NCBI GenBank assembly: GCA_000708835.1
Contig: DF236958.1
Location: 428,694 to 474,224 of the forward strand
DNA: 45,531 nucleotides
From: Klebsormidium nitens
Taxonomy: Eukaryota; Plantae; Klebsormidiophyceae
Reading direction: 5' to 3'
The position numbers were made by a program, and so were the translations under genes. Shown piece by piece: positions 1 through 45,333 of this stretch; position 1 is the first letter of the stretch; the number at the start of each line of letters is the position of its first letter. The notes under the pieces were generated by a model, which worked only from the letters and a program-made list of their open reading frames with translations, was not told the DNA's origin and did no database searches.

Positions 1-534
1 GGGGAGTTGTCAATGGAGGCGTGGTGACCGGGGGAGTAGTCACCGGTGGAGTTGTCACCGGGGGAGTCGTCACGGGGGGAGTGGTCACAGGGGGCGTGGT
101 GACCGGGGGAATGGTGACCGGGGGAGTGGTGACCGGGGGCGTGGTGACAGGGGGAGTCGTCAAGGGCGGAGTAGTGACCGGGGGAGTTGTCACTGGAGGC
201 GTGGTGACTGGGGGAGTCGTCACCGGGGGAGTAGTCACCGGGGGAGTCTTGATTGGGGGAGTTGTCACCGGAGGGGTAGTGACCGGGGGAGTAGTCACCG
301 GTGGAGTCGTCACTGGGGGAGTTGTAACAGGAGGCGTAGTGACCGGGGGGATAGTCACAGGTGGAGTTGTCACCGGGGGAGTTGTCGCCGGGGGAGTTGT
401 CACAGGAGGCGTGGTGACCGGGGGGGTAGTCACAGGGGGAGTCGTCACGGGGGAAGTGGTCACAGGGGGCGTGGTGACGGGGGGATTAGTGACCGGGGGG
501 ATGGTAACCGGGGGTGTAGTCACCGGTGGGGTGG
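1..534 (-). repeat. Coding tandem repeat, ~35 copies of a 15-bp unit encoding V-T-T-P-P
   Basis: The + strand shows GGGGGAGT(G/T/C/A)GT(G/C)AC(C/A/T) periodicity. The reverse complement reads GTx ACx ACx CCx CCx, with variation mostly at third codon positions. Confidence 0.95.
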
Positions 535-1528
535 GAACCGGGGGTGCGGGCAGGGCCGCCGCGCAGTTGAGCAGAATAGCGATGAGCGTTTGGGGGCAGC
601 CGGTGAAGGCGGGGCAGCAGAGGGGGATCGTGTTGCCGAACTGGCCCAACCCGAAGAAGGGGCAGAGGCCAAAATTGACGAGGCAGATGAAGACTCCAGC
701 TGCAAGGAAGGGAAGCTGGAATTAAGGCTGTGCCCATGCACCAAGATGATGAAGACCAAAAGGAGTCAGCTAGGATCTCAGGCGTGGTAAGAGATGCTGA
801 ATTTGTGCGGGAAAGAAAGCTGTATTGCCAGCTTGAACACGTTACGCTACCTTCAGCCAGTACCGATACTCTAACGACGACAGCTGGCGTTTGATTCGCC
901 CGAAAAGCTGACAGTGGTTCAGCAAAGACTTTGGATTCAAGAATGGGCCTAGGGGCGACGAAGAAACGAAAGATTGTGTAAGTGCTGACGAGTTGAGTAT
1001 GCGGGTGAACGTACTTGCTTGCAACAGGCTGCGCTGGGTCGATGCGTGGGCGATCTCTTGTGAGCTGTTGGAAGCAGACAGCGCTTGGCTCATCTCCAAC
1101 GCGAGAGCCTGCACATCAGAAAGGAAAACACTCGAACCCAGCGGACAGAAAACGTGCGCCCAAATGAGTAACAGGGAAGAACCTCGCTTGTCAAGCTGTT
1201 TCGTACCTGCCAGCAATCAGGAGCTTTCATTCGTGGTTCTTCTGAACGGCTGCTGGGCGGCCATGATCGAATGTGCAAAGTTCCCGCTCAGGCGGGCCAG
1301 CTCTTCTCTTTGACTTTTTAAAAGGCGACCGAGGGATATCCTATTCCATTTTCAACATCCGTTCTGACCATTGGTACTCATCCGACAAAGGAAGACATCT
1401 TGAACATCTTAGTTTCAATCGAATTGGTGCGAAGCAACTCTCCGGCCGGCTATGGGAACGCTCACCTCATTCGCGAGCGAGGCAAGCAGCAGCAGACCCA
1501 GAAAAAGAAACCGGGCCTTGAGCGCCAT
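1..1528 (-). CDS. Secreted Cys-rich/Pro-Thr-rich precursor, paralogue A (3' end beyond window). Exons 1528-1466, 1108-1015, 699-<1
   Basis: Exon 1 MALKARFLFLGLLLLASLANE is signal-peptide-like, donor GTGAGC, phase 0. Exon 2 ALALEMSQALSASNSSQEIAHASTQRSLLQA, acceptor GTGCAG, donor GTACGT, phase 1. Exon 3 (acceptor TTGCAG) reads (T)GVFICLVNFGLCPFFGLGQFGNTIPLCCPAFTGCPQTLIAILLNCAAALPAPPVPTPP then (VTTPP)n, open to the window edge. Phases are consistent and the structure matches paralogues B and C. Confidence 0.85.
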
Positions 1529-3618
1529 TCTAGAGCGCGGGCTGCAGAGGGAGGACCGCCGGGATAGCTGCGTCAATCTGGACGGTGCGGCAGGAAGCTC
1601 GCAGATAAGCGGAAGCTGAGAAAGCTGCCAAAGGCTTGGGGAGAGTAATACGCCGCTTTCACTCGAAATGTAGCTGATCTTGTAGGACTCTGCAATGCTT
1701 TTGTACAGGGCTTGCAGAGCTTGAAGCGCGAGTGAGACCAAGTAGTCGGCCGCAAACTTTCTGATCCAGCAAAGAAATGAGTGCTAAGCTGCATTTCATT
1801 CTGACCTGGGCATTCCATCATTGATGCAGGCAAGAGAGGTGCTGGTAAAACACCGAAAGATGATCAGGAGTCCGTAATCATGGCTCTTCACGCGTTGATC
1901 GCGCTGCCTCGAGTGCTCGCTTCTAAATGGTGGCTCTTTAGATTCAAGCTCAATGGCGGCCGTGTTTTCAAATCCAACGTTGAGTACAGGATGGATTCGC
2001 GTTCTCATCTCTCTCGTTCTGGATACCTCGTCCTCTTTCCTTTGGGCCTCGGAACACAATCGCAGCTTGCTCGGATATCTTGCAAATTATCAAGAAACAG
2101 GACCCTTGGAGAGCGGAAACCTTTAAGCGACGCGCAATTTACTAGATGCGGCTAGAGCAACATACACCTCCATTGAACTAACTCACTTCGTCCGTGAAGT
2201 TCCTGTCGCAATTTGAAATGGGTTTGGCAGCGAGGCTGCGTGCCGGGGACTCTACCTAAGCGCCACCGTATTACGATGAGGGAAATCAAGTGGCTGGGTG
2301 GCTGACAGCTGTCGTGAAAGGATTGTTATCTCTAATCTAGATCACACAAGATACTCGAGGAGACCGGGCGTGCCTTCTCGGTTGCGAGACTCTCTCAGGC
2401 CACCATCTTCTGTTCCAAGACGGTTGCAAGCTCTCCATCTGCACGTCACGAGCGGCAGGCAGCCGTGCGGGCTCCCGTGCGCGGGCGTCTTCGTCCCAAG
2501 GTTGGACGGCACTTCGCTTTAAAGGCACACGGCGCTCGTTGCAAAGATCTGGGTGCCTGCGAATTGAAGCTTAGGACAAGCGCAAAAGTCCGTTCGACCC
2601 GAGGGGTACGAGGGACGTCACCATCCTTCTCTTAGACTTGTTCTTCTTGCACAAGCCTGTGGGCAGATCGAAATACCGGCCCAGGAGTTCTCGTCTTTTG
2701 AGGCGCAACTCACCAGCTAACGGAGAGCGCCTCCTGAGTTGTTAGCAGGATTCTGAATGCCCTCTTTACGGCCACTCGGTTTGGGCCCTGGACGGCCTAG
2801 ATCACACAGATAGCCAGGCTTTACCGGTGCGTCAGATGGGCGCAATAGCGTATGAAGCAACGTCAGCCCGTGAGATGGCTGGCACCACTAGGTTTGGGCG
2901 GAAAAGACACCGAGAAATGCTTCCCGCTACATCGAGAGGCGTTGTGCAACTCGAAGTTTCCGCTCTCGTTTGCGGTGTAGAATCCAGGAGGCCACACTGC
3001 GCGATATCGAGAGCCTCGGAAGGAAGGAACGCTTGTTGTGTCCTAGATCAAGCGTATGCACTATTCAGATACCACTAGACACTGTACAGAGTCCGAGTGG
3101 CCGATGAGCGGAGTCGAAGGAGGCTATCCTCGAAGCACGTCCGCCTTTTTAAGTGTGACGAGATGCAAAGCTTAAGCAGGTTCGCTTGTTTCTGTTTGCC
3201 GAGAAGCCCTCGGAGACCGTAGAATAGCCTTCAGAATAGCTCGGACTACTGAGAATGTTTGTGTCCGGGGTTCGCTCAACCTCGTAATGAAGAAACGGAA
3301 TTCCATGAGAACATCCAGGACTTCTCCGCTATGTTTTCTGGCTGACTTTGCACAACTAACTGCGGGGTGGACCTGGTTCAGAACGTTGTGGCCAGGAATG
3401 TTACCCATCTGCACGCACAGGTGCACGGGGCTCCTTTTCTAGAAGCCCAGATTACTACCGTCATTCCTTTCTTAATTTATATTGAGAACTCTAAAGTACA
3501 CGCCGAAGCTGATCTCAACTCCCAGGGCCCCTTCACCCAGTATCGCGCCTTTCTCAACGCTCGCTCATTTCGCAGAGCTGTTTCAGCTGTTACTAGCTTT
3601 CTTACACGACAAGCAGAC

Positions 3619-5495
3619 ATGGCTGCCTGGGTGTCCGCCCTGGTGGGAGCGCTCCTCCTTGTCACCCTGGGAACGCAGGTCAGTCTGCGGAGCGACCCTT
3701 TTTTTTTACACATCTGCTGCATAGATGCTTACTGATCTAGAAATCATCGCTGGAGACTCGGCATTCAGACCCACCTTTGTTGATGCTCTTTGCGGTAAAA
3801 CGCTGCTACGTTTGTTCCTTCTCCTAAGAATGTCGCTCAGCAAGGCTTTCTTCTAAGAGGCCTACTGATCTTTCTTGTCAATCCTGGAAGAGAAAAAGAG
3901 AATTTAGAATCGATGGAGCTCGATCTCTCTTGCAGGCTTCAGCGTCCCGCGCTTTCCCCGAAGTCGCGGCGAACCAGGCGGGCGCGCGCACTCTGTTGCA
4001 GGTGCCGACGGCCGCGCCGCCGGAGGGTAAGTGCTGCGACTCCCGCTTGAAAGCGCAAGGCCGAAAGCAAGGTGGAACTTTGGTGTATCAGTCTGTTTCA
4101 TGTTGGGATCCACTTGCCTCTACGTTTGGAGCTTCTTTTGGAACAACGGGTCTGCGTGAGCGTGACGTCTGGTTTGGAGCCGTCTAAGAAGAGATGCAAA
4201 GATTTTGATCTCTGCGTACGACCTCTGACTAAGTTCTCTGATTAAGATCTTCGATCAAGAATCATCGAGATTATGCGGAAAGTGGAAAAATCCAGCATGA
4301 AAAGGTTTGTAAGCTTTCTTCACACCGAAAACAGGCCACTTTATCCAGTAAGAGGGCTATGCTAAGAGGGCTCTGAACCTATAGGAAAGCTTTTGCAGAC
4401 CTGAATTAGAGGGACCGCTTAATCGTGACAGTTCTGATGTATTCAATTATTGGTATGAAATCGTGGTTTCAAAACTCGTTCCCGAGACTTCGTGCGTGCG
4501 TCAAAACATAGGCCAGGACGCGCTGATGGAAGTCTTATTCTGGTGGCTGAAGGCTTACCTTGTTTTTTTAAGATTCTTGATTGCGGCTTGTGTCTTCGTG
4601 CGTCTCTCTTTACCGCTTAAACCACCCTACACCATCTTGGGTCCAATTGCCGGCTTGAACCTGCTTCTTGTCCCGAATTTTGTAGGCTCGGCTTGTGCCG
4701 GCAACCAGATGCTTTGCGCCGTGACGAACATCGGTTCCTTTACGGCGAACGCCTCCCTGCTCGTCTGCTGCACCGGCGTGTGCCCCGCCTCGGGGGACAC
4801 CCCCAGGGACGTGGCTGCCAGGTATACAATGTCTAGATTTTATATTGAGTTGGGTGTATGTTGAGATATCAACAAACTGAAAACCAAAACCCAAAATTGA
4901 CATGCTCCGCACCAGTACGCATCCTAGACCCCAAAACCAACCCCACCCGTCACCCGGGCATGATCTAACTCAAACTAGCCGTTAAACTCTTAACATAAAA
5001 CCGAGACTTTTCTGCCAGGTGCATGGTCAGCACTGGCCCCTCTGCCGCCCCGGGCACGACTCTTAGCGTACCGGTCCCCGTCATCAGCCTCCCGAGCGCC
5101 GCACCCGGGCCGGTACCGGTTACTACCGTCACCCTACCGAGCATGGCCCCGGGCGCACCGGTCACGATCATCGTCGTCCCGAGCCTGCCCACCACAGCGC
5201 CCAGCCCGGCGGAAACCATTCCGGTCCTTCCGACCACAGCCCCCATTCCGGCGGAAAGCATTCCCGCCCTCCCGACCACAGTCCCCNNNNNNNNNNNNNN
5301 NNNNNNCCGTCCCTCCCAACCACAGCCCCAATTCCGGCGGAAACCTTTTTCTCCCTCCCGACCGAAACCGTCACACTCCCGCCTCTGCCATTCCTCGAGA
5401 CCGGGGCCCCGGCTTCGACCCCGAGCCTCACTTTTCCCATTGTTCCTATTGGGGCCCCCATCCCGACGGTTGCGACCGGGACTGCCAGTACTTAG
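3619..5495 (+). CDS. Secreted Cys-rich/Pro-Thr-rich precursor, paralogue B. Exons 3619-3678, 3936-4026, 4686-4821, 5019-5495 (N gap in last exon)
   Basis: MAAWVSALVGALLLVTLGTQ | ASASRAFPEVAANQAGARTLLQVPTAAPPEG | SACAGNQMLCAVTNIGSFTANASLLVCCTGVCPASGDTPRDVAAR | CMVSTGPSAAPGTTLSVPVPVISLPSAAPG...LPTTAPIPAE...PIVPIGAPIPTVATGTAST*. All introns are GT-AG with phases 0, 1, 2. The frame changes across the 20-N placeholder gap. Confidence 0.85.
5185..5366 (+). repeat. 42-bp coding tandem repeat (LPTTAPIPAETIPV-like 14-mer) interrupted by an assembly gap
   Basis: Copies start at 5185, 5227 and 5269, and after the gap at 5313 and 5355. Confidence 0.85.
5287..5306. other. Assembly gap (20 N) inside a coding repeat
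   Basis: Run of N. Confidence 1.
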
Positions 5496-7249
5496 TCTGG
5501 CGAAGGCTGCAGTGCATGTTCCCGAACAACGGCTCGGCTAGAAAGGGATGCAAGGGATGCCTTTGTTGCTGAGAATAGGCAAATGCCCACAGAGCGAAGT
5601 TTTGCTGTAGGACTGTTCTGTATACGATAGTATCAGCCATTACGTCGAATCGAAGTTGACTTCCAAGTACTGAAGTAAACGTCGTTTGAGTCCGCCCTGC
5701 ATTGAGAAGACGTCACTTTGGTATAGTGAGGCAAGAAAGCGTTCCGAAGAGTTTCACGTTATTGACCTCCAAGCGCTTGATCAGTTGATTCATCAAAATA
5801 TGCTCTCGACATGAACGGCATGTATTACATGCTGCACGCTGCGGAAAGATTGCTGTCAAATCAAGAGACACGCGTGATTGAACCGAAGATCTCACATCCT
5901 CTCGGGTCTTTGCCATGTAAGAAACACCTGAAATTGGTGTCGAAGTCAGTCATGAGATCATCAAGTCAAAGTCCACATCCAAAGACTGGCGGCCCACAAT
6001 GACGAAGCTGCCGTGGTATGTTTTAAAAAGTTCACTGCATGAGCCTCGTTTGGGCCTCGCAAACATGTAGGGGAACTGTTGTGGAAGCGTATACTGGCCG
6101 CAGGAGTTTTCCGTCAGATCTTGCTTGCCCATCTCCCCGTGTTCAAACCTTGTGTCTCGTCCTTTCATTCATGTGAGTACGTCGCCATAACGTTGTGCCA
6201 ATAGAGAAGCTGAGTATATCAAGACTGCCATCTTGAAGATGCATGAGAGCAAGTCTCAACCCTTCAAGAAAGCATGAAAAGACGAGCGTCGGCAAGGCAG
6301 TGTCCAAGTAAGCCGCATACAAACTTTGGTTGATTGACTGAAGAACGATCGTTCAATAAGGAATGAAAATGAATACGCTGAAAGTTCCAATCTACTTCCG
6401 TACTACCTCGCCAAGCAGCACCTTCTCAAGCAGAAGGCTGCAAAAATGCTACCTCAGCTTATCATGTGTCCGAAACTAAAACGAAGTGTATTCTCAACGC
6501 CTAGAGGTAATCGCGTCTCTGGGCTCCAGATGTCACTGCACTGCAGCACTAATCTGTGACAAGTAGATTTGCCAGTCCGGTAAACAGCAGCCGCTCGTCA
6601 AACGACTGCCTAGAAGGCAACCTGGGAGTCTTTTCTGCCGAAGTCATCAACCTCGAAAGTGCCTGCTTCATGCAAAGGCCATCTTGTTTCTGATTGGACC
6701 GTATTACCCCCAGGATTCGTAGCAGTTCCATTTCTGGACTTTTACCAATCTTGCAACTTGTTTCGAGGGCGACATTCATCTCGACAGACCGGAAACTACA
6801 AGGTTGGGGAAGACCAGCTGTGAGGACGCTTCTCCGTGTCCAAGGATCCCATTCGCACCGTTGACCAACCTCGTTGTGAGCGGTGCCTTGACCGGTTGCT
6901 GTTGCACCGGGACGCCGAGAGACGTACGGCACTCGAGCTTGTCGCGGAAGGCGACCCCCCGATGCAATCTGCTGACTTGCAAAGTGCAAAATCGATTTCT
7001 GGTCTGCTCGAGAATCGTACTTCGGTTCCTCGCAGCAATCAAGAGGGTTAGCCATGCATAGGCGAGGTTTGCGGCAAAGCGTATCGCTTAGCATCAGCCT
7101 AACGACGTCAAGAAGCTGCGGCAGTGACGTTCTTGGGCTCGAGCCGGGCACCAACGAACAGCGTTGCAAGCTAGGGTTACCCTGGTTTTGCTGCCAGTAT
7201 CTCGAGCAAGAGTCACTTCAATAGCTGTGAAGATTTCGGCCTCCCATCA

Positions 7250-7281
7250 GCTGGCCGGCATAAATGCTGGCCGGTATAAAT
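7250..7281 (+). promoter_or_regulatory. Tandem 16-bp duplication containing a TATA-like box upstream of paralogue C
   Basis: GCTGGCCGGCATAAAT followed by GCTGGCCGGTATAAAT, about 150 bp upstream of the ATG at 7427. Confidence 0.5.
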
Positions 7282-7426
7282 GCCCATTCACTGGCCTTGC
7301 ACCATTTCAAACGAAAGTTGCCAGCAGACGCACTTGCTCCCCGCGCGACTTTGCAGCAATTCCCTGGAGCGCCATACATCCGAACCTCTCTGTAGCGCCT
7401 TCACCTTCTTCGCCCAGTACTTTAGC

Positions 7427-8566
7427 ATGGCTTCCAACAAGGTCGCCGCCCTCCTGGGGCTGCTCCTGATCGCCGCCCTCAGTGCCCAGGTGAGGAGAGA
7501 ACCGCGGCGCCTCGGTTGGCGGCCCGTCTGCTGATACTCTGTCAAGTTTCCTCGCTGTTTGAGCTCGTGGAATTGTTGGAACGAGCGACGGGACCAGGTC
7601 TGCTGTTCCCATGAGTTGGAGAAGCAAAACATTCGCGCTTGCTTTCGAAGGGTCACAACTAGAGCTGCTGCGAAACATGCGTGACTAGTGTTCTTTTCAC
7701 ACCACAGTAAGACCTTCATTAAGTACGGTCACAATTCTCAAGCGGTAGCACCGTCACGTTGGTTGCAGGCCCTCCCTTTTGAACACCTCTTCTGACCCCT
7801 CTCGTCTTTTTGGGCAGGCGTCGAGCGAAGACTCGTCGGCCTCCGCCCGCAAGCTGCTGCAAGCCCCCCTGGTCCCTACAGGTGAGCGTCAGATCAGACG
7901 TGTTCAAGAGTTGAAAGGACGCCGGATATGGACGACCAGGGATGCTCTTTGGGACTGAAAGCTGGGAGGGCAGAGGACTCACTCATTACAGGATTGGAAG
8001 TTGAATTGGACAATGTCTCTTCCCTTCCAACCGATTTTCCAATTGGTCTGCTCTCTGCATCTGTGTCCGCTCGTGTTCTTGTGTAGAATGTCTGAGCAAG
8101 CTTTTGAGCAGTCTGTGAGGCTATAGTCATGGAAGCGGAAAAAGTGATCTACACCTTGCCAGCTTTCCTGTCCCCCAGGGCCGGTTCCACTTGTTCCACG
8201 TGTTTCCTTTTCACCCAGAGTCCTTCGCCGGTTTCGATCACGTCTCGAAATCTTCACTTCATCAAAGATAAACTTCAAAATCACCGTCTAGCTCACCCTC
8301 CGCCCCCGTCCTCTGCAGGCCGCTTCCTGTGCAATGATACCACGAAACCTCTCCTGTGCCCCTTCAGCGGCATTGGCGCTTTCCCGGCGGGGGTGGTCTC
8401 CGTGCCGGGGTGCTGCTCGAACGCCACCGGCCCTGTTTGCCCCGCGATGAACAGCACTATCGCCGCGTTTCTCCTTTGCGGCTTACCGACGGAGGCCCCG
8501 CCCGGGACCCCGCCCACCCCCCTCACCACCCCGCTCCCGCCCGCCGCCACCCCCGCGGCCGTCTAG
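7427..8566 (+). CDS. Secreted Cys-rich/Pro-Thr-rich precursor, paralogue C (124 aa). Exons 7427-7489, 7818-7881, 8319-8566
   Basis: MASNKVAALLGLLLIAALSAQ | ASSEDSSASARKLLQAPLVPTG | RFLCNDTTKPLLCPFSGIGAFPAGVVSVPGCCSNATGPVCPAMNSTIAAFLLCGLPTEAPPGTPPTPLTTPLPPAATPAAV*. Donors GTGAGG and GTGAGC, acceptors GGGCAG and CTGCAG, phases 0 and 1. Exons are GC-rich relative to the introns. Confidence 0.9.
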
Positions 8567-11350
8567 GCAACCCTCCCAGACTGTAAACCAAACTCCGATT
8601 TAAGATCGAGTCTAAGGCCAAGTCGTACTCAAACTTAGAGGGTTTAAGACCGTTCTCATGGGCCAGCAGCTCATCCCAAAGGAACTCTGTTCCTTAGGCT
8701 AGATTGGATTGGATTGTCTCTCTGCACAGTAGAGCCCCTTTTCTCCATGCACCTGATCGGTGTGAGCACAAGAAACTTAGTCAGTAGTGTGTATCTGATG
8801 AGTCCTCCTTGTACTGGTAAGGATTGTCACTTGGATGGAGTGGTTATATAAGTATCCTGATTCCGGGCACCAACCAGAAAGGACTGGACAAACTGTACAT
8901 GCAACATTAAGCAGACATAGTATTTGGATCCGAAGCTCCGAACGGCTGTAGCTTCGCAACAGAATCCTCGACATCGAGGTTTTCTACTAAGTTTTCTTGG
9001 CGCGGTCTCTTGCTGTCCCATCCGGAATGCTATGATGTCGCCTTGCGTTTCCGTAATCCGCTACCCCTACGCTGCTGTCTACTGAATGTCATTCCGAGCA
9101 ACCCATAGCGGCTTGCCTAAGTAGCTACTTCGCGATCTCTCTAGGGTCTGTCATGGCACGCCCTTTGCATATGACGACTCTTGCTCTATCCTGTATACAC
9201 GCCCTCTCAACTACCTTCGTATCTTATTATGCGTAACTGTTGAATTCGAAGTCCGCCTTAAGCTTTGTGCGATCTCTGTGACTGAGTCAATCAGCATGTT
9301 TTCGACTGCAGTTTGACAGTGGTTAGGGCGCAGTTGGAAGCCAAATTGATAGTGCGCGCTTTCACATCGATGTGCACGATCTAAATACACATGAAGGGTT
9401 TAATACCGGCCAATACCCATGGATCGTCGTGTCGCTATCTCTGTGGGACACGTCTTCTCTGCTGCTGGTATCAATCTCCGACTTTGCTTGACGTATGATG
9501 CTAGGACTCATGTGGCAGCAAACGCTGCAGCTGAAGAGAAAAAGGAACCCGACGGGGAACCATTGGAACGTACATCGATCAGAAAAACCCACCTCAAGAT
9601 TAGCAACGATCACATGCTGAACGGCCGATCTGATTAGCGGACTCGTTCGTGGGTTTGAGCGACCTTGATCAGTCGACTTAGGACACTGGGGCTGATCAGG
9701 ATAAAATCTTCCTGCGCTCACGGCCCGGCCACGGTCAAGCGATGCGTTGGTCAAACTTTTAATGCTCAGAGGCCTAGGTCTAAAACAAATGCTGTGAGGA
9801 AGTGTTCTGAGCCGCGGCCATAAGTATGTTGAGGTCTACTCCAAAAGCTTCCTAACCGTGAAAAGCATTGTATGACGCTTGCACTGCGGTTTGCGTCACC
9901 GTATCAGGTTTAGAGTCGTTTCACTTTAGCATCACCACTACGCAACTTTTCGCAAAAATCTAATGGCCGCGGTTCGTGGAGAAGATTTGTCAAAGGATCT
10001 GAAAGCTCAAGCTTATCTCTGCACTTATATTCGGCATGTACAATTTGTGATCAGCAACAGTCAGCAACGGCTTACGAAAGTTACAATTTCAAGGCGAAGC
10101 GGACGAGTCGGCGATCAAATCCGTTCAGGCTATGGTTTGATGCGGAGCCGACAGGTGGTCAGCAGCCAATGTGTCGATCCAACGTACGGCTGTGATGCTG
10201 ATCTGCAATTTGTGAATTGCAGCCCCCAAAAATTGGCGACTTTTGTTCTTTCTGTGGGTCCAAGCTCAAACTTCACATTTGGGTGAACTCGGAGAGTCGG
10301 ATGCAGGAGCTACCTGCAACGACCAATCTTGATTAATACTGAACTTTTCTCTTCAAATATGAAGGCTTTGGTCGGCTTTGGTCAGGCTGCTGCAGGTGCA
10401 CGATCCGCTGCGAAGGACGCCGCGGCCGCGGGTCCGCCTCCGGGCTTCGAGTGCGCCCGGCCGCCCCAGCCCGACTCGGAACTCATACCTTAACCCAGTG
10501 ATTCGTGGTTAATGTTTTTAGTTAATAGAAAATGCAACGCCCACATGCGGCCCCACATACTGGAAATACGAGTACCGTACGGAAATCTGAGCTTAAATAA
10601 CTAGATTTGTAGTTTCATCAGGTTTGTTTCGATAACCTTCTCTAACCTTCTCGGGTCGACCATGGTCCATCTTCTCCCGTTTGCCGTCCGATGTTTCTCA
10701 GTCAACCCATTGCTTGACCTCCACGGTCGATAAAATACGCGCGCATGCAAGGGTCCGAGTCATGGTCAACTTGGTCAACTACTTAGCAAGGGCCAAGGGG
10801 CACCCGGCATTCTGATTCTGTTGTTGATGTCAAAAGAATGGCGCACAATCGGAGTCTCAACGATGCCGCAGGACCCCTATCCATCTGACCCAATCGAAGC
10901 TGGCGTTGACTGCTCCTCTCATAACTTAGTCAGAGGCAAGAAGGGGACATGATGCTGGCGCGCAAAAGAAGCTTTTCTGATGACAGCCTATCGGCGCAGC
11001 ATAGCCCGCGGAACGGATCAGAACAGAGACGGACGAGGAGGATAGCGCCTGAAGGGCAATGCGCAGCAGCAGTTGCATTGGCAGTGGCGCATTACTCTCG
11101 GTGGAGGCTTAGCGACGCCATTGATATAGGGTTACTTAGGTCTTATCCCTGATTCCAGATCCAGTGCAGACAGAATGCTGTGACGCAGCGAGACGCCACA
11201 TTGGAAAAGGGGACCTCTATACGCAGCAGAGAGGAGGTGCCGCAATGAAGTGTACAAGTTTAGGGTTCTACATAATTGGGGCAGGATAAAGCACTGCAAT
11301 TACCATTAAGTAGGGGGCGGGGCGTGGGGGAGAGACCAGGGGCGGCAAGA

Positions 11351-14300
11351 ATGGAGGAGACCACGACGGGCATGCTGCAGAAGCAGTTTGAGGTGCTCAA
11401 GTTTCTGGGCAAGGGCAGCTATGGCAGTGTGCATAAGGTCAAGCGCTTTTCGGACGGGAACACGTATGCCATCAAGGAGTCCAATGTCAAAAATATGGCG
11501 CAGGTACGCAACAAGCGATAAGGCCGCATCTGGTAATCCGTGCAAAGCTTTCCAGAGACTTAGCCATAGCCCACGCTACTTTTAATGGTGCAGGGTCTGT
11601 GGTCCCTGCACTCCTAGAAACTTAAGTCGGGTCCTTGAAGGGAGGCGGAGTGAAGGTCAAGAAGTTGGGGCCCATGGGTTCCATGTCGTTGGCCCTATGA
11701 TTCCATGTTTGCATTGTTTCTGAGGGGCTGAACACCGATGGAAGCCTAGCTTGATGAAGTTGCAGTGCTTTGGAATGGTAATGTAGGAACTTTTTACATT
11801 GGGGCCGCCGTTGAAACATGCGCTGCAGGTCTTGTGGCAACTCTTGGACAGCAGGAAAAGGTTTGGGGGGGTAAACATGCATCATTAGTCCCCTACTATT
11901 CTGGCGGGTAAAACTTGCCCCTGTCACAATGCAAGCGGGCACAGCCTTTTGTGTACAAGCCACTGCGTTGGTCCCCAAGGACCATGGCTATAGAAACAGA
12001 GAAGCATGCCTAGCACTGATACCGCTCTGGCCCAGCTTTGCACAACTAGACACTGTTGAGCACACAAGCGCCGCACTAGTCGCAGCATATGAACATGCAT
12101 TGGAGCACGCCTTGCTGCATATTCAAATCAAGCATATTAAAGGGGCTTCGAGACTCAGGGGCGGGCTAAAAAGCCCACGTTTGCCTCGTCGCTTATGTGT
12201 GCATCTGCTGTGCTCAGGAGGAGAAGATGGACGCGGTGAACGAGATCCGGCTTCTGGCGTCGGTGCGGCACGACAACGTGATCCAGTACCATGAGGCGTT
12301 CATCGACGGGGGCAAGCTGTGCATCGTCATGGAGTTTGCGGAGCACGGGGACCTTGCCAAGGCCATCAAGTGAGCGCTCACAAAGGGGTGGCGGTCAATC
12401 AAGGCCAGCCGCACTACAGAGTTGAAGTTAGGAAGCCACCTCGCTTGGGAAGGCAGCAGAGTACCATCGGGTGGCTCACTCCCTTATTCAGGCCTTACAC
12501 GACTCTTCAAGCTGCTCCCACAAGAGCTCTCTCACTACAAGAGAATGGCCTGCTGGGTTCAGGGGCAATTTGGGCAGCGTCGCATAAGGGGTGATGCAAG
12601 TACAGAGTAATCAAAGAGACGTCATGACACCTTCTTGAAGTCCGGCGTGATGCTCTGATGCAAGCAGGAAGGTTGTCGTCTCTTCTACGATTCTGCTCAA
12701 TCCTGACACACACACGATGCTGCACTGTTGCCTTATCAAGTGTTTCCTAACATGCTCAGCTGAGGCAGTGGAAATGCGTCTAGGAAACTTTCGGCCTTGA
12801 CTATCACCCTCACTGGGTGAGAGGGTGCGTTCCAGACATAGTCGTGGCTTGGATCGTTGTCAGCCGGATGCGTGGTAAGCTGGGGTAACCCCGCGAGCTT
12901 CCTTTGTGCACAGGGACCGGGCACAGCAGCGGAAGCACTTCCCCGAGGAACAGATCTGGTCGTACCTCATCCAGATCTGCCGCGGCCTGCAGGCGCTCCA
13001 CGCAACGCGCATTATCCACAGGTAAGCATGCATTGCTCCCAGCGTGGGTACAAGAACGTGGAACGCGTCAAGTCCTCGTAAGGGCCCCCGCGCAGCTGCC
13101 AACGAGACTCCCAGCTTATGAGTTTCCTACTCAGCGTTTGCTTCGCGCCTTTTCTAGGGTGCTGTCCTTGTTCTTCAAGGAGTATACGCGAAGCTGGGTT
13201 CTGCTTGTCAGCTGGCCTAAGCTGGTGCACTGACGCCTGCGACGGGCCGAGTTGCTCTTCATTGAACCACCCCCCGGCCCTCCATCTCTGGCTGTAAATC
13301 TCATCAAAGCTTCCTACATTTAGAAGTAGCAGAGAGAGTTGGGCTTGGGTTCCGATAAACCTGCTGTTACCGAGATCAGGCGCTGACCCTGGCAAGGTGC
13401 GCGCGTGCAGGGACATCAAGTCGGCGAACATCATGCGGCCGGACAGCAGCCGCGTCAAGATCGGGGACCTGGGCGTCGCCAAAGTGCTCAAGGGCGCCAT
13501 GACCAAGACGCAGATCGGCACGCCCCACTACATGCCGCCCGAGGTGCGCGCGCCAGGCCCTCGATTGCAAGCGGCGGTCTTGAGTTACCGCTCAGCAAAG
13601 CCGTGTTCGTACCCAGCTTCTACTACGATCACCGGTACCCTGGCGACGCATCTTAGCTTCGCGCTTACGGGACGGCCCCTGCTACCAAGTTTCTTGAGAA
13701 AGTGTTGAGTTACCCGCCGGTAGCGTTAAAACGAGCGGTGGATTGGGTTCCAGCTGACAGGGTCTGCGTGCGCGGTGCAGGTGTGGAAGAACAAGCCGTA
13801 CTCGTTCTCGAGCGACATCTGGGCGCTGGGCTGCGTCCTGTTTGAGATGTGCACCTTCAACGTGCCCTTCGAGGCGCGCAGCATGTCCGAGCTGCGCTAC
13901 AAGGTCAGCCGCGCCGCACACCACAGAAACAGACAACGTCTCGCTCCGGACACCGCTCTGGCACCTTTAATTGCCCGTCGATAAGTACTTCTGAGCCGGT
14001 CTGTCGCGGAGTGGGCTCTTGAGCAGGGGAGTAGACCATTCAACCATCAATCGTCGCGACTTATCAACCTGGCAACATGAAAGCATGCGAGGATGGCTGC
14101 TCGTTGACTCGGTTGACCGGACTGCCACTTCCGCAAGTGCGTGCGCTTACCACTACGCTGCCACCATTTTCCTCCGTGGCTTATAGTGGGGTCCCTTGTA
14201 CAGGTGATCCGCGGAACTTATCCCGCCATTCCGGCGGAATACAGCAAAGAACTCGCGCACATGGTGAAGACGTTGCTGAATATCGACCAGGTAAGCACCG

Positions 14301-17165
14301 CCACAACCAGGCTACCAATTGCAGCGGTTTGCGTGAAACCTGTCACGGAGTTTGCGAGCGGAGCACTTGTGTGCACGAAAAATTGGTGCGACATCCGTGC
14401 ACGGTCAGTGACGTCACCAGCAAAACCTTCAGACTCAGGCCGTCAATTACCGTTAAGCGAAGCTAAGGGCGGTAGCAGCCTTTATGACGTCACTAATCGT
14501 GCAAGACAAGGCAGCTCCGATATCGTGCATACCATTAAGATCGTCGGCGACTTCGTACAGGTTTCACGCACACCGCTAACCGACTGCGTTCTTACTCCCT
14601 TGCTCGCCGTTGTTTCCGACTGCGTTCTTACTGCTTCTATGCTTCCAAAGATTGCATGGTGCGTTCTCCTCGCATGTTCCGAACAGCGTCACGTTGACCG
14701 TAGAGCTGTTCGGAAAGGTGTTATTTCCATCTGGAGTCTCCCCCACTCTGTGCTCAATTTTCGAAAATAATAGCAGACAATGGTAGATTTAAAGGCTCTC
14801 TCCAGGCCCGTGGTATTCCCGGGTGGCAAACGCCGACCTTGGAGAGTTCCACCGTATGTTTGGAGTTGACGTGTGGCGCTGTCCTCGCAGGCGACCCGCC
14901 CGAGTGCGGAGCAGGTGCTGGGCATGCCCATCGTGCAGGCGCACATGGCGCTCGCGCCGCCGCTGTCGGTGCCAACATCCGATGGCAAGCCGATGCCCAA
15001 CCCCATGCTGGCCACCATCCAAGGTCGGCCCGCCTCTCGACGTAATCAAGTCTGAGCTTGTAACGAACGAAAGATAGGGACTGCGCGCCGCTCACTATCT
15101 GAGAACTATCGGTTCCGCACTTACGCTTATACCTTCAAATGGTTTTAGATCGCTGCCATATCCTCGGTTAAAAACCTGCAACGCTCCACAATGTACTCAC
15201 AAGGCAAGCTTTGTGGAACTTCTCTCTGGAAGATTTCCTCCTTTTGAGAGGGGCAGTTTTTCTCTGCCATTGACATGCAAAGGGTGATTGCGGGTGGATA
15301 GCTGTGATGTCACTCCAGGCGTTTCGGGTTCGAAGCCGTCTTCCTTGGTGTGTGCAGTCCCCCAAAACCTGCGCCTTCTGAAGGCGAAGCTGCCCCGTCC
15401 CGCCTATCCCAGCAGCGCGCCTTCGACCGCTCCCCCCTCGCGGCCGCCCCTGCCGCCCTCCGCGCCCGCCCCCAGCGCCCTTTCGCGGCAGCCGGTCAAC
15501 GTCGGGGGCAGACTGCCCGGTAAGCCGCCCGGAAGACTGAGGGTCCTCGAAGTCGAGCATCCGCTTTGAGAAACCGAGCGACTTGAGCGGGTATCGTGAG
15601 GATCCTGCCCTCCTCTGCTGGAACTTCAAGACGGCTCGCTAGGATCGTCATCTTTTACGTTGCCGACCACTGAAGGTCGAAAGGCGGTGTTTGAACGCTG
15701 CAAGTCTTGAGAATCCACTTCGAGCTCCGGACCCGATCTTTTGAGCATGATTAACCCTGAGCACAAAGTTAGACCGACCACTTTGTTGTCCGGCCCATCC
15801 CCTCACGATCATAGGAATGGTCTTTGAAGACGTGGCGTTCTTGCGTCTGTCGACGGCTTCAGAAACCTTTACCCCCCTCCTCGTGTTGCAGCCATTGCGA
15901 GCGGTCGATTGTACCAGGGCCCTTCCCCGGGCGCTGGGCGGCCGCCGGCCGGTCCGGCGCAGCCCGCTCTCCGGAACAGCCCCTCCCGCCACGCCGCCCC
16001 GCCGCAGCCGGCGGCAAGCCCAGGCAAGCGCCGGTTACCCTCTCCCAGCACACCGAACGGCTTGCGTCGTACCACAACCAGGCCCATTTATTTACACGAC
16101 AAAATGCATGACGAACGCTCGTAAACCGGCTCCGAGCAATCCCACTCAGAGAGCGATCTAAGCTCGCGAGCTCTTGTCGAAGACTTAAGTGCAGCCCCTG
16201 CATAGTCAACCGCACCAGCTCCTGATCGCTGAGAGAACGAATAAGCAGGGCGAAGCTCCTACGGACTCCGACGGAGGGTTAAAAAACGGTGGCTGACGTC
16301 ATCGGGCGGTGATGTCCTGCAGCGGGCGGTGCGCGGCGGCCTTCCGACCAGTTGGGCGTGATGCCGGGCAAGGACGTGCCGGGGCTGCCCGCCGGGTACA
16401 ACCCGTACGCCAAACCGGGGACCAAGAATGGGCCCTATGCGAAGAGCCCGTACGCACAGGGAGCCACTCGGTAAGCGGAGGCGCGCCTCGGGGCAACGAA
16501 ACGCGGGACGACGGGGTCATGATGCTGGATATTCTGGCAGCCGTGGGAGCAAAAGAGCTTGACCGACTTTGACGATTCATGTTTCAAGTGGCGACAATAG
16601 AAACCTCAATTCGACCAATTTTGAAGTTGAAAGCTTCACGGGAAGACGTTACACGGCACAACGTTTCTGAAACCATTGGCCATATCTCCGGTGCAGGAAT
16701 CCTTACAAGCGTGCGCCCTCAAACGTCAGCCGCGCCCCGGCAGCGGCGGGGAGTGCTTACGGAGCGGCGCCGGCGGCTCGGCAGCCGTCCCCGCGCTTGG
16801 CAGGAGTGGTGGGCAAGGCGACGGGGGCCAGGGCGCAGGTGGGCCGGTCGGGCCGGGAAATCCCCCACGTACTCCGCTGATCCTGTTGCCTTTGTGATTC
16901 TGTTGGCATCTCGTCCCTCATGACAGGTCCGGCTAATAAGTTTGAAAGCGATGCGCCTTCCGTGCGGTAGCTGTTTGCGAATGGCAAGACGGTGGCAAAT
17001 GAATCAACAGGCTGCTGAGATGCGGTCGGCTTCTGGTGTGTGCAGAACGGCGGCTACAGCCGGCAACCGAGCAGCCGCGGTCAGCCGCAGCAGCCGGGCG
17101 CGCCACAGAGGCAACAAGCGCCGGCCGCAGTCCCCCCCGGGAGGATGGCGGGCAGATTCTACTAA
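11351..17165 (+). CDS. NIMA-related (NEK/CNK-type) Ser/Thr kinase with low-complexity tail. Exons 11351-11503, 12218-12369, 12914-13021, 13411-13543, 13781-13903, 14204-14290, 14891-15023, 15358-15519, 15892-16023, 16323-16470, 16697-16838, 17046-17165
   Basis: The spliced product has [75 protein letters not shown] and RPSAEQVL, all NEK-family hallmarks. Exon phases join through to TAA at 17163-17165. The tail exons are less certain than the kinase exons. Confidence 0.93.
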
Positions 17166-20396: not shown

Positions 20397-23300
20397 ATGG
20401 ACGCAGCGTGGCAAGCCTTACTGGCAGAGGTTTTCATTGTCCACAGATTTCGTAATTTCTTGATGATGTCCGCCACAAGCCGGCTCCAGTTTCTTCCTGC
20501 AGCCTCCTGTGTTTCCTGCTGGCTGCAGCAAACCTGCGCACAAAAGCAAGGCCTTCAATCAGGCAGATCACACTGGTATAGTAGCACTCAAGGGATTAAC
20601 AGGTGGCGAGAGTCAGTGACGCGGGGTGCGCGCTTCAGCTCAGGTGTTGCGGGAGTCACCTGCGCAGCCATGAAGTACAACAACCTAGGATGGTCGGACG
20701 TGAGGGTCTCTGAGGTGAGCATTGGCCTGCTGCATCGACAAAGTACAATGCTGTGGTGGTACAGACTCCCAACCTCCTCACAAGTCTGTGACTACCTTAA
20801 GAAATGCTTGATACAACTTGTAAGACAACTTTGTGATCCAGAACAAGCACAACTAGAATGATGTATGGTGATGTCGCAGCATGGGCTCAAACGCTATGCA
20901 TCAAACCCCCCACGTTTTGATCCTCAAGTTGTCCTGGACATTGCCAGCCAGCGGGGCGACCTGTCTGGAGTGGTGCATTCATCTGACCTTTGATCTTGTT
21001 ATCCTGAAGGCCTGCTTTGGCGTGATGACTTTTGGGAACCAGACGGGGGAGGAGCAGGCACATGAGCTGCTCGACTATGCTCAGTCGCGGGGAGTCAACT
21101 TCTTTGGTGAGAGTACAGTTGGCGCCTGTTGCCTTGAACTTGCGAAGCAGCCCCAATATACGCCGTCAACTCATACAAGTTGCTTTTGCTCTTGATGGTT
21201 GCTCTGCTGCCTCTGTAGGCAGTCTGATTGGGGGCGACAGGCCTACCTTCACAGAGAAACTCGTGTCTCTGAGCGTGGGACAGTACAAGATTGGCTGTGG
21301 AGGCGACGTACTTTAAAAGTTGCTTTGTTCTTGTGGTGACGGTGCAGACACTGCGGAGATGTACAGCGCCCCCATGTCTGAAGAAACTGCGGGCAAGTCC
21401 GAAGAGATCCTGGGCACCTGGCTCAAGCGACAACCACGGGACAAGGCGATTGTGGCAACCAAGGTGAGAAACTTGTGCTGTAGAGATCTGTCCAACAGTC
21501 CATCAACGATCAATGGAATGTCTGAAAGAGACCTTCCGATGCAAAGACTCTTTTGAGCCCCAGCCAATGGTCCAAGGAAGGACTTTTTTCAGCCAGGCCC
21601 CGTTTGAAAGAACTCAATTGCATCCATCAATCTTTTGGCCCAAGGAGATTCGTTTTTCTGTTCCGTCTTGATTGGACAAGCAGGAATGCGACGGGATCAA
21701 AATTGTGGCTCTTCTTTGAGAACGCGGTGTCTTGCAGATTGCTGGTTACACTCCCTCTACCTGGGTGCCTGGCAACCGGAAGGTTCCACGCGATCCAACT
21801 CGGCAACCCGCGCGCCTGGATCGAGACTCTATTTTTGCTGCAATCAAGGGGAGCTTGCGGCGCCTGCAAACTGACTACGTGGATCTGTACCAACTGCATT
21901 GGCCAGACAGGTAGACACGGGGCCAGGCAGTTGGCTGGACCAACATTAATTGTCCCAGACCCCCAAAAGGGATGTAGGCGAACGCACAACAGGAAATGTA
22001 GACAACTATGCCTGCTTGAGCCATCTTACTTGCTAGTACCATGAACAAGTCTTTTCACATTTTATGGACGCATTGAAAATATATTGTTGCGAGAAGACTT
22101 CAGGGCCAATTGCCGTCCAGCCCTGTCAAGCTTGCTTTAAGATAGATAGGGGTGCTCCTTGAATGCGCAGGTACGCACCCATCTTCGGCCAGACTGTTTA
22201 TGACCCGAAGCAGGAGAGGCCGGACGCGGTGCCGTTTGAGGAGACCGTGGAAGCACTGGGAGTCCTGATCAAAGGTGGGCACGCTCGTCGGTGGGTGTCA
22301 TCAGCGGAGTGATCCATGCCGGTAGGCCGTATCCCGCCCGTGATTTTGAGCTCACCTTAACACAAACTAAGGTGGAAGGCACAGTGGCAGCATCAGGCTG
22401 GATTGGGGAGGGCATCTACCTAAGTTGAAGTCGTGAATGTCAGCAATAGAGCGGGCATGATTCTGAGAGGCCACAGTCCAAACGGTTGAAGTCAAGATAC
22501 GACTCCTTAGAACGGCCACAAAGCCCCAGTCAGTCACAACCGATCAGCGAAGCTAGATCTCGTTTACAAGCCATAAACTCGTCACCAAGCTGTGCTCTTC
22601 CCCGAAGTGAAGCCAGGCATCCTGCACGGAGGGGATTAATGCGTCCTTCGGTCGTGCGAGCCGCACTCGGCACAGCCGACGAGTAGCAGGCTCACGTCGC
22701 GTTCTGTTTCACACTTTTTGCAGAGGGCAAGATCCGGCATTGGGGCCTGTCCAACGAGACGACGTTCGGGGTCTGCCAGATGGTGGCAGCCGCAGACAAG
22801 CTGGGCGTGCCGCGCCCCGTCAGCATCCAAAACAGCTTCAGCCTCGTCCACAGGTGCGTGTCGCGCCGCACGCAGCACACAGCGAGGTTGTCGGCTTCCT
22901 AAACCAGGGCTTAAGTCTAAGCGCTGTGGTATATGTTCCGAATTGCCTTCTGGACACAACGCAAGGCCGTTTCGTCGGTTGAATAGTCGTTGTTCCCTTT
23001 TTACTTGTCCTCAGCCGCCTCGATACGAGGCTTCGCAATTTTCATTGAGCAGTTAGCGGCCCGGCCTTTTCTGCGCAGGTCGTTCGAGACGGAGCTGGCG
23101 GAGGCGTGCGCGCCGTCCCACTTCAACATCGGGCTTCTCCCGTGGAGCCCCCTGGCCGGCGGTGAGTGAAAGCAAGTGAAAGGATGACGGCCCGTCTAAC
23201 CATTCTCCATGGTCACCTTTTGACCCGTAAGAAACAGCAGAAAGCTGAGGGACGCGAGTGTGCCTCTAACTCGTGCCTCAAATGCGATTCGGCCAACGAT

Positions 23301-24936
23301 CGCCACGACAGAAGTAGGTCAAAGTCAGGCTTGTACTTTTTTGAACGGGAGGACTCGACCCTTTCTTTCCTGAACCCTCTTTCTCGCCCCTACCCTGTCC
23401 CACGCTTTCAAACTTTCTTACAGTGTCTCGTTCGAAGAACTACTGAGGCACTCTTTCCGCACCCAGAATCCGCCAGCTGTCAGCTGCTCTGCCCGCAGGT
23501 GCTCTGACCGGCAAGTACCTGGACGGCGGCAAGCCGGCGGGGGCCCGTTTCACCGACTTCTCCGACTACATGCGCCGCTTCCAGGCGGACCCCACCATGC
23601 ACGCCGCCCGTCAGTACGCTGAGCTTGCCAAGTCCATAGGTGAGCATAACACCAGGTCCAACCCTTCTCGCTTAACAGAATGCAAAGGCCGGTGTATTTA
23701 AGTTCTCTGGTCCTCACAGCTTCGCTTCTTCAGGGACTTGCCTGATTGACCCGCCTTGCCCCTCGATTTGCTGTTAGCTAAATAAATCTAGGGTCTTGGA
23801 CGTCCGTGCGTGCATGCCCGTTTCGGTTACCCAACAGGGTTCCTTTCGTCCGAGTATTAGGGACAACAAGGTGCCGGAGAAGCTCAGCATAGCACAGTGG
23901 TACGCTTACTATCTAAAGCCTCAGGTTGCGGCTCCGACTCGGCAAAGGCCGTGTTCCTTGCGGTCCTTTCGCAGAGGGGCGAACATAGATTTTTAGTGCG
24001 TTCGCTTAAGGCGACGTTCCGTAAGTTCGAACCCGTCTGCGCGGACCTCAGAAGTGTCAAAAAGTATTTGACTCGGATACTTCGACGCTTTGCAGCAAAG
24101 GTCCTCGGAATCGCCCAGCTATGAGTATTTACCACGAGCTTGCAACTTCGTCAGCTTGTTGAGATGCCGTACATGACGTCTTCAAATCATAACCGACCGC
24201 CAAGTGTGCAATAAGGACAGACTTTCGTTCAGCCCGTCGATCTCTCGCAAGTTTCGCGATCGACGGTAGAGCATACGAGTCACCGGCGACGGCTGACGGT
24301 TCGGCTTTTGCGTCAAGCTTTTTCTGAAACGGAACACCTCCCTCAATCCACCGCTAGAGCGTCGGCGTACGCTGTTGGCACTGTGTTTGACGGAGCGCTT
24401 CTCGTGCAGGCGTGTCCCCCACTGTTCTTGCGCTGGCGTGGTGCAAGTCGCGCTGGTTCGTGGCGTCTACCATCTTTGGGGCCACCTCCATGCAGCAGCT
24501 GCAGGAAGACCTGGGTGAGCCGCTGACGCCCACGCCAGCGTGCGTGCACACTTAGAGTGCTGCCGGAGCAATGGCTTCCGACGTGTTTCTTGCAAGATGC
24601 CTTGATCGCAGAGCCACGCAGCCGCTAGATTGTTTGTTTTCAGATCGAAGTTGGTATGAGCAGACTTGAGAGGCCATCCCGAGCTTACCTTGTTTTCCCG
24701 AAAGGAAATGTGTATCTTTTGGATTCTGAGGTGGCACGAGAGTTGCCGGTCTTCGTTGGTAAGGGAAGGATGGTCAGCACAGTGACGAGTTCCATTCTTA
24801 GCGGTCACCTGCCTTGCTTCTCACCCGGTTCCTTGCTCTGCCCGCAGATGCCTTCGAGGTCGAGCTTTCCGACGAGGCGTTGCAGAAGATTGATGCCATC
24901 CATTTGCAGTCGAAGGACCCGTGCATGACGCTGTAA
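20397..24936 (+). CDS. Aldo-keto reductase, Tas-like, with N-terminal organellar targeting extension. Exons 20397-20714, 21010-21106, 21348-21463, 21738-21910, 22171-22274, 22724-22853, 23079-23161, 23499-23639, 24410-24514, 24848-24936
   Basis: [35 protein letters not shown] (Asp/Tyr), IVATK (Lys), [20 protein letters not shown] (His), [48 protein letters not shown]. All intron phases are consistent. The start codon could be 20397, 20463 or 20466. Confidence 0.95.
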
Positions 24937-26012
24937 TTTATTGAGTCTTCGAACTTGTTAGGCACGCTTGATGAGTAGGCCAGGAACAAACTTCGGCATA
25001 TTGCCGAGAGTTGAGCTGCGCATTGCAGAGCTATAGCAGTTGGACCGCGGGATACCCACATTCCTCTGGGGAGGTATTGCAAGACGTGTTGTGCTAAAAT
25101 AATTGCTCGATGACACAGAGTTTTAGTCCATTGCGAGATCACAAGATGCAATTTTGCCTTGAACATCGAACGATTGACAGTTCCTGCATGACGTCATGCA
25201 CCTATTCAGCTAGAGACAACCATGTTGACCCAATATCACGTGTGGATGTATTGTCGCATATGTCTTTTTGTCGCAGGCCCGCGAGCGGGAAAATCCCATG
25301 AATGTACTACTTAGTCTACGACCTAGTTGACTAGCCGCAGGTGCGGCCGGTCACAGAGCTGTCGTGCTTCTTCGCACGCGCATGATCTGTAAGCAGGAGT
25401 TTGATGTGAGCTTGCCACTGTGCGAATATATTTGCCATACGGCTAATTTAAGTACGATCACGTACATATCGTAGAGCTGGCAGCATTCTGTCGAGCTACA
25501 TATACGAACCGCCATCAACTACATGATTCGAAGCTCAAGTGTACCAAAAATCCGTTGTATACTTCCACGCGCTTCGTCTATTCAGACCATGCCACATACT
25601 CTCGAGCAAAGCCTAGCATGCTTGAAAAACAGCACCCAGGCCCCGAGATGCATTCGGTGCAAGCAGGCACTTGCTATGCTCCTGATAATGTCCACGATTC
25701 CGTCATTTATCCTATGGAATTTTTCCCTTGCATACTCAGAAACTTTCCTACCATGCTACTTTGCGTACCAGACTTTCGTCATCACCTGTTCGTCAGTTTA
25801 CCTTGTCCAGCTTCTCACGACCACTCTACCTAGCTTAGTAAGGCCAAGGCCACAGCAACACGGTACAACCCGAAAACGCTCAAACTCTCCAACGTGCTAA
25901 GATTCAACTCGAAAGATCAACATGCTCTCATGTGATCCAGGGTTGACCATAGAGACCTCCTGCCCCGCTCCTAGACTCTTGATCAAGACCGTCCACGATA
26001 GGCAAGCGGCTT

Positions 26013-33726: not shown

Positions 33727-34181
33727 NNNNNNNNNNNNNNNNNNNNNNNNNNNNNNNNNNNNNNNNNNNNNNNNNNNNNNNNNNNNNNNNNNNNNNNNNN
33801 NNNNNNNNNNNNNNNNNNNNNNNNNNNNNNNNNNNNNNNNNNNNNNNNNNNNNNNNNNNNNNNNNNNNNNNNNNNNNNNNNNNNNNNNNNNNNNNNNNNN
33901 NNNNNNNNNNNNNNNNNNNNNNNNNNNNNNNNNNNNNNNNNNNNNNNNNNNNNNNNNNNNNNNNNNNNNNNNNNNNNNNNNNNNNNNNNNNNNNNNNNNN
34001 NNNNNNNNNNNNNNNNNNNNNNNNNNNNNNNNNNNNNNNNNNNNNNNNNNNNNNNNNNNNNNNNNNNNNNNNNNNNNNNNNNNNNNNNNNNNNNNNNNNN
34101 NNNNNNNNNNNNNNNNNNNNNNNNNNNNNNNNNNNNNNNNNNNNNNNNNNNNNNNNNNNNNNNNNNNNNNNNNNNNNNNNN
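33727..34181. other. Assembly gap (N run)
   Basis: Run of N. Confidence 1.
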
Positions 34182-44749: not shown

Positions 44750-44875
44750 TATTTGAAATCAACATCGTATATTTTGAAATCAACATCATATAATTTGATA
44801 TCAAAATCAAATAATTAGAAATCAGAATCAAATAATTTGAAATCAAAATCAAACAATTAGGAATCAAAATCAAAA
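44750..44875 (+). repeat. Six tandem copies of a 21-bp AT-rich unit (consensus ~AATTTGAAATCAAAATCAAAT)
   Basis: The core (T/A)G(A/G)(A/T)ATCA recurs at 44754, 44775, 44796, 44817, 44838 and 44859. Confidence 0.92.
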
Positions 44876-45267: not shown

Positions 45268-45333
45268 AATCTTGATTTTGATTTCTAATTGTCTGCTTTT
45301 GATTTCTATTCATTTGATGTTGATTTGATGTTG
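45268..45333 (-). repeat. About three copies of the same 21-bp unit in inverted orientation
   Basis: TGATTT recurs at 45279, 45300 and 45321. The reverse complement ACAATTAGAAATCAAAATCAAGATTG matches the end of the left array, ACAATTAGGAATCAAAATCAAAATTG. Confidence 0.85.

Follow-up and report, generated by a model that had tools for sequence, protein, structure and literature searches.

What is encoded by the first 8,566 bp of a 45,531 bp stretch of the Klebsormidium nitens scaffold DF236958.1 (positions 428,694 to 474,224, hereafter the window), and do the genes found there form a family of a known kind? An initial annotation, made from the DNA alone, described three spliced genes, A on the minus strand and B and C on the plus strand, each predicting a signal peptide, a propeptide ending RxLLQ, a domain with six cysteines (Cys), referred to here as the head, and a Pro/Thr tail. 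Together with two paralogues, D (KFL_000090690, with two modules, D1 and D2) and E (KFL_000090650), which sit upstream of the window, they make up a cluster of five genes and six Cys modules in the order E, a methyltransferase-like gene, one unrelated gene, D, A, B, C and a protein kinase gene. As judged from sequence, the family is real and small and belongs to a known general kind, but had not been described before and is partly mis-annotated; it is known from one genome, that of a land-dwelling green alga. The reading preferred here, with a probability of roughly 45%, is that its members are secreted chimeric proline-rich (hydroxyproline-rich) wall or surface glycoproteins; that the products are secreted wall glycoproteins is likely.

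Structure of the predicted genes

Exon sets for A, B and C were translated by script from window positions 1-9600, and signal peptides were called by hydropathy. The predicted spliced frames are free of internal stops and every predicted intron is GT-AG, which bears out the three gene models and their four-part layout. In each gene, intron 1 is in phase 0 and follows the hydrophobic leader, and intron 2 is in phase 1 and lies shortly after R-x-L-L-Q; the exon layout of D and E is the same. The pattern of five Cys and Pro was matched three times in the window but in none of 100 shuffles, and a pattern scan of the window gave no fourth copy of the module beyond A, B and C. Cys spacings are 6, 14, 0, 5 and 10 in A, 6, 16, 0, 3 and 13 in B, and 8, 17, 0, 7 and 12 in C, and the Cys pattern and spacing, the three 10-residue cores and the tail lengths (28 amino acids (aa) in C, 187 aa within the window in A) are all as first described. 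Modules correspond to exons only in part. The signal peptide and propeptide occupy separate exons, as had been claimed for every module, but domain and tail share a single exon in A and C, and the domain of gene B is interrupted by an additional phase-2 intron ahead of Cys6.

Gene C predicts a protein of 124 aa with three N-glycosylation sequons. Exon 3 of gene A runs on beyond the window and, after a gap of 1027 N, reaches a Lys/Pro-rich terminus with the last residues GGYY-stop; this end (L002:7046-7316) contains Lys-rich Pro blocks and a terminal Tyr-Tyr that is a possible cross-linking site. D, in the flanking DNA (L002:10002-12759), carries a Pro/Thr tract and a probable phase-1 intron between its two heads and finishes in an extensin-like Lys/Pro segment; its public model, in pieces of 170 and 119 aa, ends before the second head. 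The Lys-rich terminal segment found in A and D contains 13-15 Lys. The E tail carries a short three-Cys motif, CPPCPC (L003:11860-11900), that could make inter-chain disulfides in the manner of an antibody hinge.

Public gene models and the gap in gene B

The public protein GAQ78225.1 (185 aa) is identical in length and exon joins to the gene B model, and GAQ78226.1 includes the gene C model. Gene A is absent from the public annotation, which instead places a 312-aa plus-strand call over it. This call was rejected as an antisense shadow because each exon of the annotated paralogues D and E has its counterpart on the minus strand here. The pattern of selection favours a coding function on the strand chosen in the initial annotation. 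Ratios of nonsynonymous to synonymous substitution (dN/dS), obtained by the Nei-Gojobori method from small counts, are <1 in the comparisons among these three genes and significant in 3 of 6, with values of 0.16-0.27 (p 0.002, 0.017 and 0.083) in the exon of the propeptide and, for the head, 0.22 in A-D1 (p 0.013), 0.41 in A-E and 0.80 in D1-E, the last two not significant.

The public model KFL_000090710 fuses B and C across a 20-N assembly gap. In this model the frame after the gap leaves the 14-residue repeat of B, and a weak donor (gtcaca) splices into the 5′ leader of C. The 42-nt unit of gene B is broken off after 19 nt and picked up 5 nt past the gap (27/30 match), and from this register across 5287-5306 it follows that 18 + 42n bases, not 20, would be absent. 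That length would keep the frame and the 14-aa repeat through to the TAG at 5493-5495, and position 5495 is the most likely in-frame end of gene B. From the repeat register, and from the ATG, signal peptide, RKLLQ and TATAAA (at -152) that C has of its own, we infer that B and C are separate genes. That they make up a single gene with two heads, as the public model has it, or that B is unrelated to the other members, or both, is very unlikely. D shows that a protein can have two heads, and apart from the Cys themselves B has no significant similarity to A, D or E; a fusion, however, would require a frame that destroys the 14-aa repeat as well as use of the weak donor, and would put a second signal peptide and RKLLQ inside the protein; C also has its own start and TATAAA. 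The public models are thus corrected in two respects, the missing gene A and the fused B and C, and expression tables keyed to them would therefore probably misreport these genes.

Relationships and age of the family

All six modules have the six Cys unchanged and share a Leu ahead of Cys2 and a single Phe, and pairwise identity among the A, D1 and E heads is 77-88%. In similarity tests with Cys positions held fixed in the null, A and C are significantly similar (p about 0.0007), B and C marginally so (p 0.018), and A and B are not (p 0.15). D2 and C are significantly similar to A, D1 and E (p ≤0.001 for C), and B is linked to the other modules only via C. B may be placed in the family on its position, exon layout and Cys order, kinship beyond the cysteines being weak.

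Across most of intron 1, A and D are identical at 259 of 313 positions (83%), and duplication within the cluster is therefore partly recent. Homologue searches reach poorly for a domain of ~45 residues with few sequences, and with this low reach no homologue outside K. nitens was found in protein, metagenome or viral searches. A profile of the three modules, the search foreseen in the initial annotation, did recover D when run against 1.84 billion representatives, but its real matches were B, C and D only, all of them K. nitens hypothetical proteins on DF236958.1. Two further matches, in snail and pomegranate, were repeat artefacts. The same profile gave D2 only 20 bits, and distant kin would therefore escape it. 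With region 22-105 of D as the query, E was the sole match. Searches with exon 3 of C and with the six-module alignment, both over short candidates only, gave no homologue, and metagenome scans and a viral scan for the head gave no match. The proposal that the family is old is not supported, given that no relative was found beyond K. nitens and that the closeness of the A, D1 and E heads points to a partly recent cluster.

The six-Cys head

The head is 41-51 residues long and contains no Trp or Tyr in any of its six copies. No credible match was found in Pfam, where HMMER filters discard matches weaker than about E 0.1, in PDB sequences or in the ESM Atlas. Set apart by the absence of such matches, the six-Cys head is an undescribed domain with no assigned family, and the novelty first claimed for this head on a secreted Pro/Thr-stalked family survived the comparison with described families. 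Weak Pfam matches to RL11D, Uteroglobin, CV_2116 and Defensin_propep (E 0.1-0.3) were rejected, as was a TAL-effector match for B (E 5.5e-5), which is the sum of many repeats of ≤4.8 bits each with the Cys unaligned. Two AlphaFold2 models built from six-sequence alignments have a predicted local distance difference test (pLDDT) score of 54-56, and both place a low-confidence helix right before Cys6. Fold searches with these models were blank and, at such confidence, uninformative. In A, D1 and E the head is hydrophobic, with a grand average of hydropathy (GRAVY) of 1.2-1.3, and has no charged residue; with the lack of Trp and Tyr, this makes cationic antimicrobial and hevein-like roles less likely.

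The head could be an inhibitor cystine knot (knottin) whose hydrophobic loop 2 is enlarged, in which case the protein would be a stalk-displayed protease inhibitor, antimicrobial or binding module. All six modules have the order C-C-CC-C-C, which is the usual one in knottins, and the length and propeptide processing are knottin-like; B further has C-x6-C and CC-x3-C, which are typical of plant and insect knottins. However, loop 2, at 14-17 residues, is longer than in a typical knottin, the predicted C-terminal helix occupies the place of the knottin hairpin in both low-confidence models, and neither Pfam nor PDB gave a knottin match. The head is also neutral and carried on a long stalk, and in A, D1 and E it lacks the cationic residues of most antimicrobial knottins. 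A knottin is, on this evidence, unlikely. A carbohydrate-binding module, hevein- or CBM-like, that fixes the stalk to wall polysaccharide is improbable. Such modules usually consist of a small disulfide head on a Pro/Thr linker, as found here, and several Phe are conserved, but the heads have none of the Trp/Tyr of such modules, no hevein S-x-aromatic-x-aromatic motif (the chitin-binding Ser and Trp/Tyr after CC) and no Pfam match.

Hybrid proline-rich proteins (HyPRPs), including the soybean hydrophobic protein, resemble the K. nitens family in having a signal peptide, a repetitive Pro-rich domain, a hydrophobic Cys-rich domain that opens C..C..CC, and tandem clusters of genes whose Pro-rich parts vary (PMC2216038). 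They are defined by an N-terminal Pro-rich domain and a C-terminal Cys domain (PMC2216038), the latter with an eight-cysteine motif (8CM) of the form C-C-CC-CxC-C-C (PMC9832785). The K. nitens proteins have the reverse domain order, an RxLLQ propeptide, six Cys without CxC, and a head about half as long that has no profile match. Lacking CxC, the eighth Cys and about 35 residues, and standing in the reverse order, the predicted head is not an 8CM member. That it is nonetheless a shortened HyPRP/8CM (prolamin) relative, minus the C6-C8 pair and the middle helix, fused head-first with the Pro-rich part last and binding lipid or membrane as HyPRPs supposedly do, is improbable. By eye, A, D and E resemble the HyPRP alignment (PMC2216038, supplement 3) in how they start, with C..C..CC at comparable spacing, and in a hydrophobic stretch closing LLN-C then Pro, and in model 1 the strand that ends at Cys2 lies paired with the CC strand, which would be compatible with the 8CM C2-C3 bond. 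These echoes are absent from B and C, the head has 41-51 residues against about 85, Pro/Gly-rich segments stand at the places of the 8CM helices, and no LTP or Hydrophob_seed match was found in Pfam. The 8CM fold has four helices; the low-scoring models of the head show a single helix. Release of the Cys-rich part by S1P cleavage, as a RALF-like signalling ligand, is highly unlikely. A signal peptide, a short propeptide and an RxLL site (S1P-type RxxL) ahead of the Cys-rich segment parallel RALF precursors (PMC11371470), and C has only 124 aa, but the site is not dibasic, YIXY and Tyr are missing, and there are six Cys rather than the RALF four-Cys pattern. In addition, D has tandem heads, the A, D and E stalks are hundreds of residues long, and no second cleavage motif separates head and stalk. 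The suggestion that these might be signalling precursors is accordingly disfavoured, the head staying joined to a long stalk. RxLLQ is present in A, B and C but is probably not the family-defining feature that it was taken to be, RxLL being a known S1P-type motif.

Predicted function as secreted wall glycoproteins

Features shared with extensins and other hydroxyproline-rich glycoproteins (HRGPs) are the Pro/Thr/Val repeats, the Lys-Pro blocks, the terminal Tyr pair in A and a weak match of the D tail to Extensin_1 (PF02095; 32 bits against a cut-off of 105). Extensins are recognised by at least two Ser-Pro3 repeats (PMC4769139), with YXY in classical forms, whereas the tail pieces read here have ≤1 each, with none in the window part of A and no YXY (the A, D and E tails contain assembly gaps), and the cluster genes are absent from the K. 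nitens extensins listed in PMC4769139. Since the stretches of tail that were read have too few Ser-Pro3 repeats for an extensin, and a signal peptide (by hydropathy), a repetitive Pro-rich domain and a non-HRGP domain are all present, the chimeric proline-rich HRGPs appear to be the right class.

For such a glycoprotein, established plant secretory biology would predict entry into the endoplasmic reticulum and removal of the signal peptide. A cut at RxLL by an S1P/SBT6.1-type subtilase in the Golgi would then leave a mature chain starting with Gln, three disulfides would form as the head folds, and hydroxylation and O-glycosylation of the tail prolines would produce an extended rod. In A and D, the Lys-rich terminal segment might bind acidic wall polysaccharide or become cross-linked (A ends YY), and the uncharged Phe/Leu/Ile-rich head would stick to hydrophobic partners such as surface lipid, the air/substrate interface or other heads. 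The molecule would thus be an amphipathic tether in the lipid-glycoprotein surface layer of the alga, an analogue of HyPRPs and the soybean hydrophobic protein. The role of the head as a hydrophobic tether is put forward tentatively, and its contact with surface lipid, substrate or other heads, adding to the lipid-glycoprotein layer and film, is speculative.

Several points weigh against the assignment to secreted wall or surface glycoproteins. The SBT6.1/S1P site is RRXL (PMC11371470), and the motifs here are R-x-L-L, not dibasic. The heads of B, C and D2 are less hydrophobic (GRAVY 0.6-0.8), and the last loop of B is polar. Head dN/dS is without significance in A-E and D1-E, and the fold models do not exceed the pLDDT given above. 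In favour of the assignment stand the anatomy of the genes, the exon layout shared with D and E, the dN/dS values below 1, the hydrophobic and uncharged heads of A, D1 and E, the weak Extensin_1 match and the Lys-rich ends. A hydrophobic surface layer of lipid and glycoprotein and a film on solid medium, described for K. nitens (PMC4927632), also fit, but the tie between this film and the gene family is circumstantial, and a search of the literature and supplements gave no mention of genes A to E.

Klebsormidium is a model for the move of algae onto land, and its hydrophobic surface layer has been reported to contain glycoproteins (PMC4927632); no paper naming them was found. The cluster supplies concrete candidates, with an undescribed disulfide domain, and the family probably helps to build the outer coat of the alga. 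A long shot is that the head is related to the hydrophobic HyPRP/8CM domain of land plants, as a minimal form that branched off early, or else has an entirely new fold, and that in either case heads assemble with one another at the air-facing surface, as hydrophobins do, and form the protein framework of the cuticle-like layer of Klebsormidium. If true, the head would be one of the molecules of a pre-cuticle waterproofing system in an algal lineage that is sister to land plants.

Sequence features and neighbouring genes

Table 1. Features of genes A, B and C (window coordinates).
Feature	Position	Strand	Basis
Gene A exon 1, signal peptide, ATG at 1528	1466..1528	-	exon translation; 10-aa hydropathy 2.98
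Gene A exon 2, propeptide ending RSLLQ (motif 1019-1033)	1015..1108	-	exon translation; dN/dS 0.21-0.27 vs D and E
Gene A exon 3, six-Cys head (563-685) and T-x-P-P-V/I tail (29 motifs)	1..699	-	exon translation
Gene B exon 1, signal peptide	3619..3678	+	exon translation; agrees with GAQ78225.1
Gene B exon 2, propeptide, RTLLQ at 3987-4001	3936..4026	+	exon translation
Gene B exon 3, head Cys1-Cys5	4686..4821	+	exon translation
Gene B exon 4, Cys6 and Pro/Thr/Val tail, 42-nt (14-aa) repeats; TAG 5493-5495 if gap in frame	5019..5495	+	
Assembly gap, 20 N; probable real length 18 + 42n from repeat register	5287..5306	.	inferred
TATAAA, 152 nt 5′ of gene C ATG (E: one at -143)	7275..7280	+	consensus match only
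Gene C exon 1, signal peptide	7427..7489	+	exon translation; hydropathy 3.09
Gene C exon 2, propeptide, RKLLQ at 7848-7862	7818..7881	+	exon translation
Gene C exon 3, six-Cys head (8330-8479) and 28-aa Pro/Thr tail, stop TAG	8319..8566	+	

A 16-nt tandem duplication at 7250-7283 overlaps the TATAAA 5′ of gene C. Adjoining the cluster is the multi-exon protein kinase gene (11351-17164; Pkinase, 530 aa in public calls), which is NIMA-like by eye. Further along the window are a multi-exon gene that is aldo-keto reductase-like by eye (20669-24937), a Rieske-fold gene with Cys replacing His ligands (26303-26828), a second assembly gap of 455 N (33727-34181), and a minus-strand gene (40200-44500) that by eye resembles those for pentatricopeptide-repeat proteins. 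Two AT-rich 21-nt tandem arrays, at 44751-44874 and 45272-45326, appear to be mutually inverted and are possibly the ends of a mobile element.

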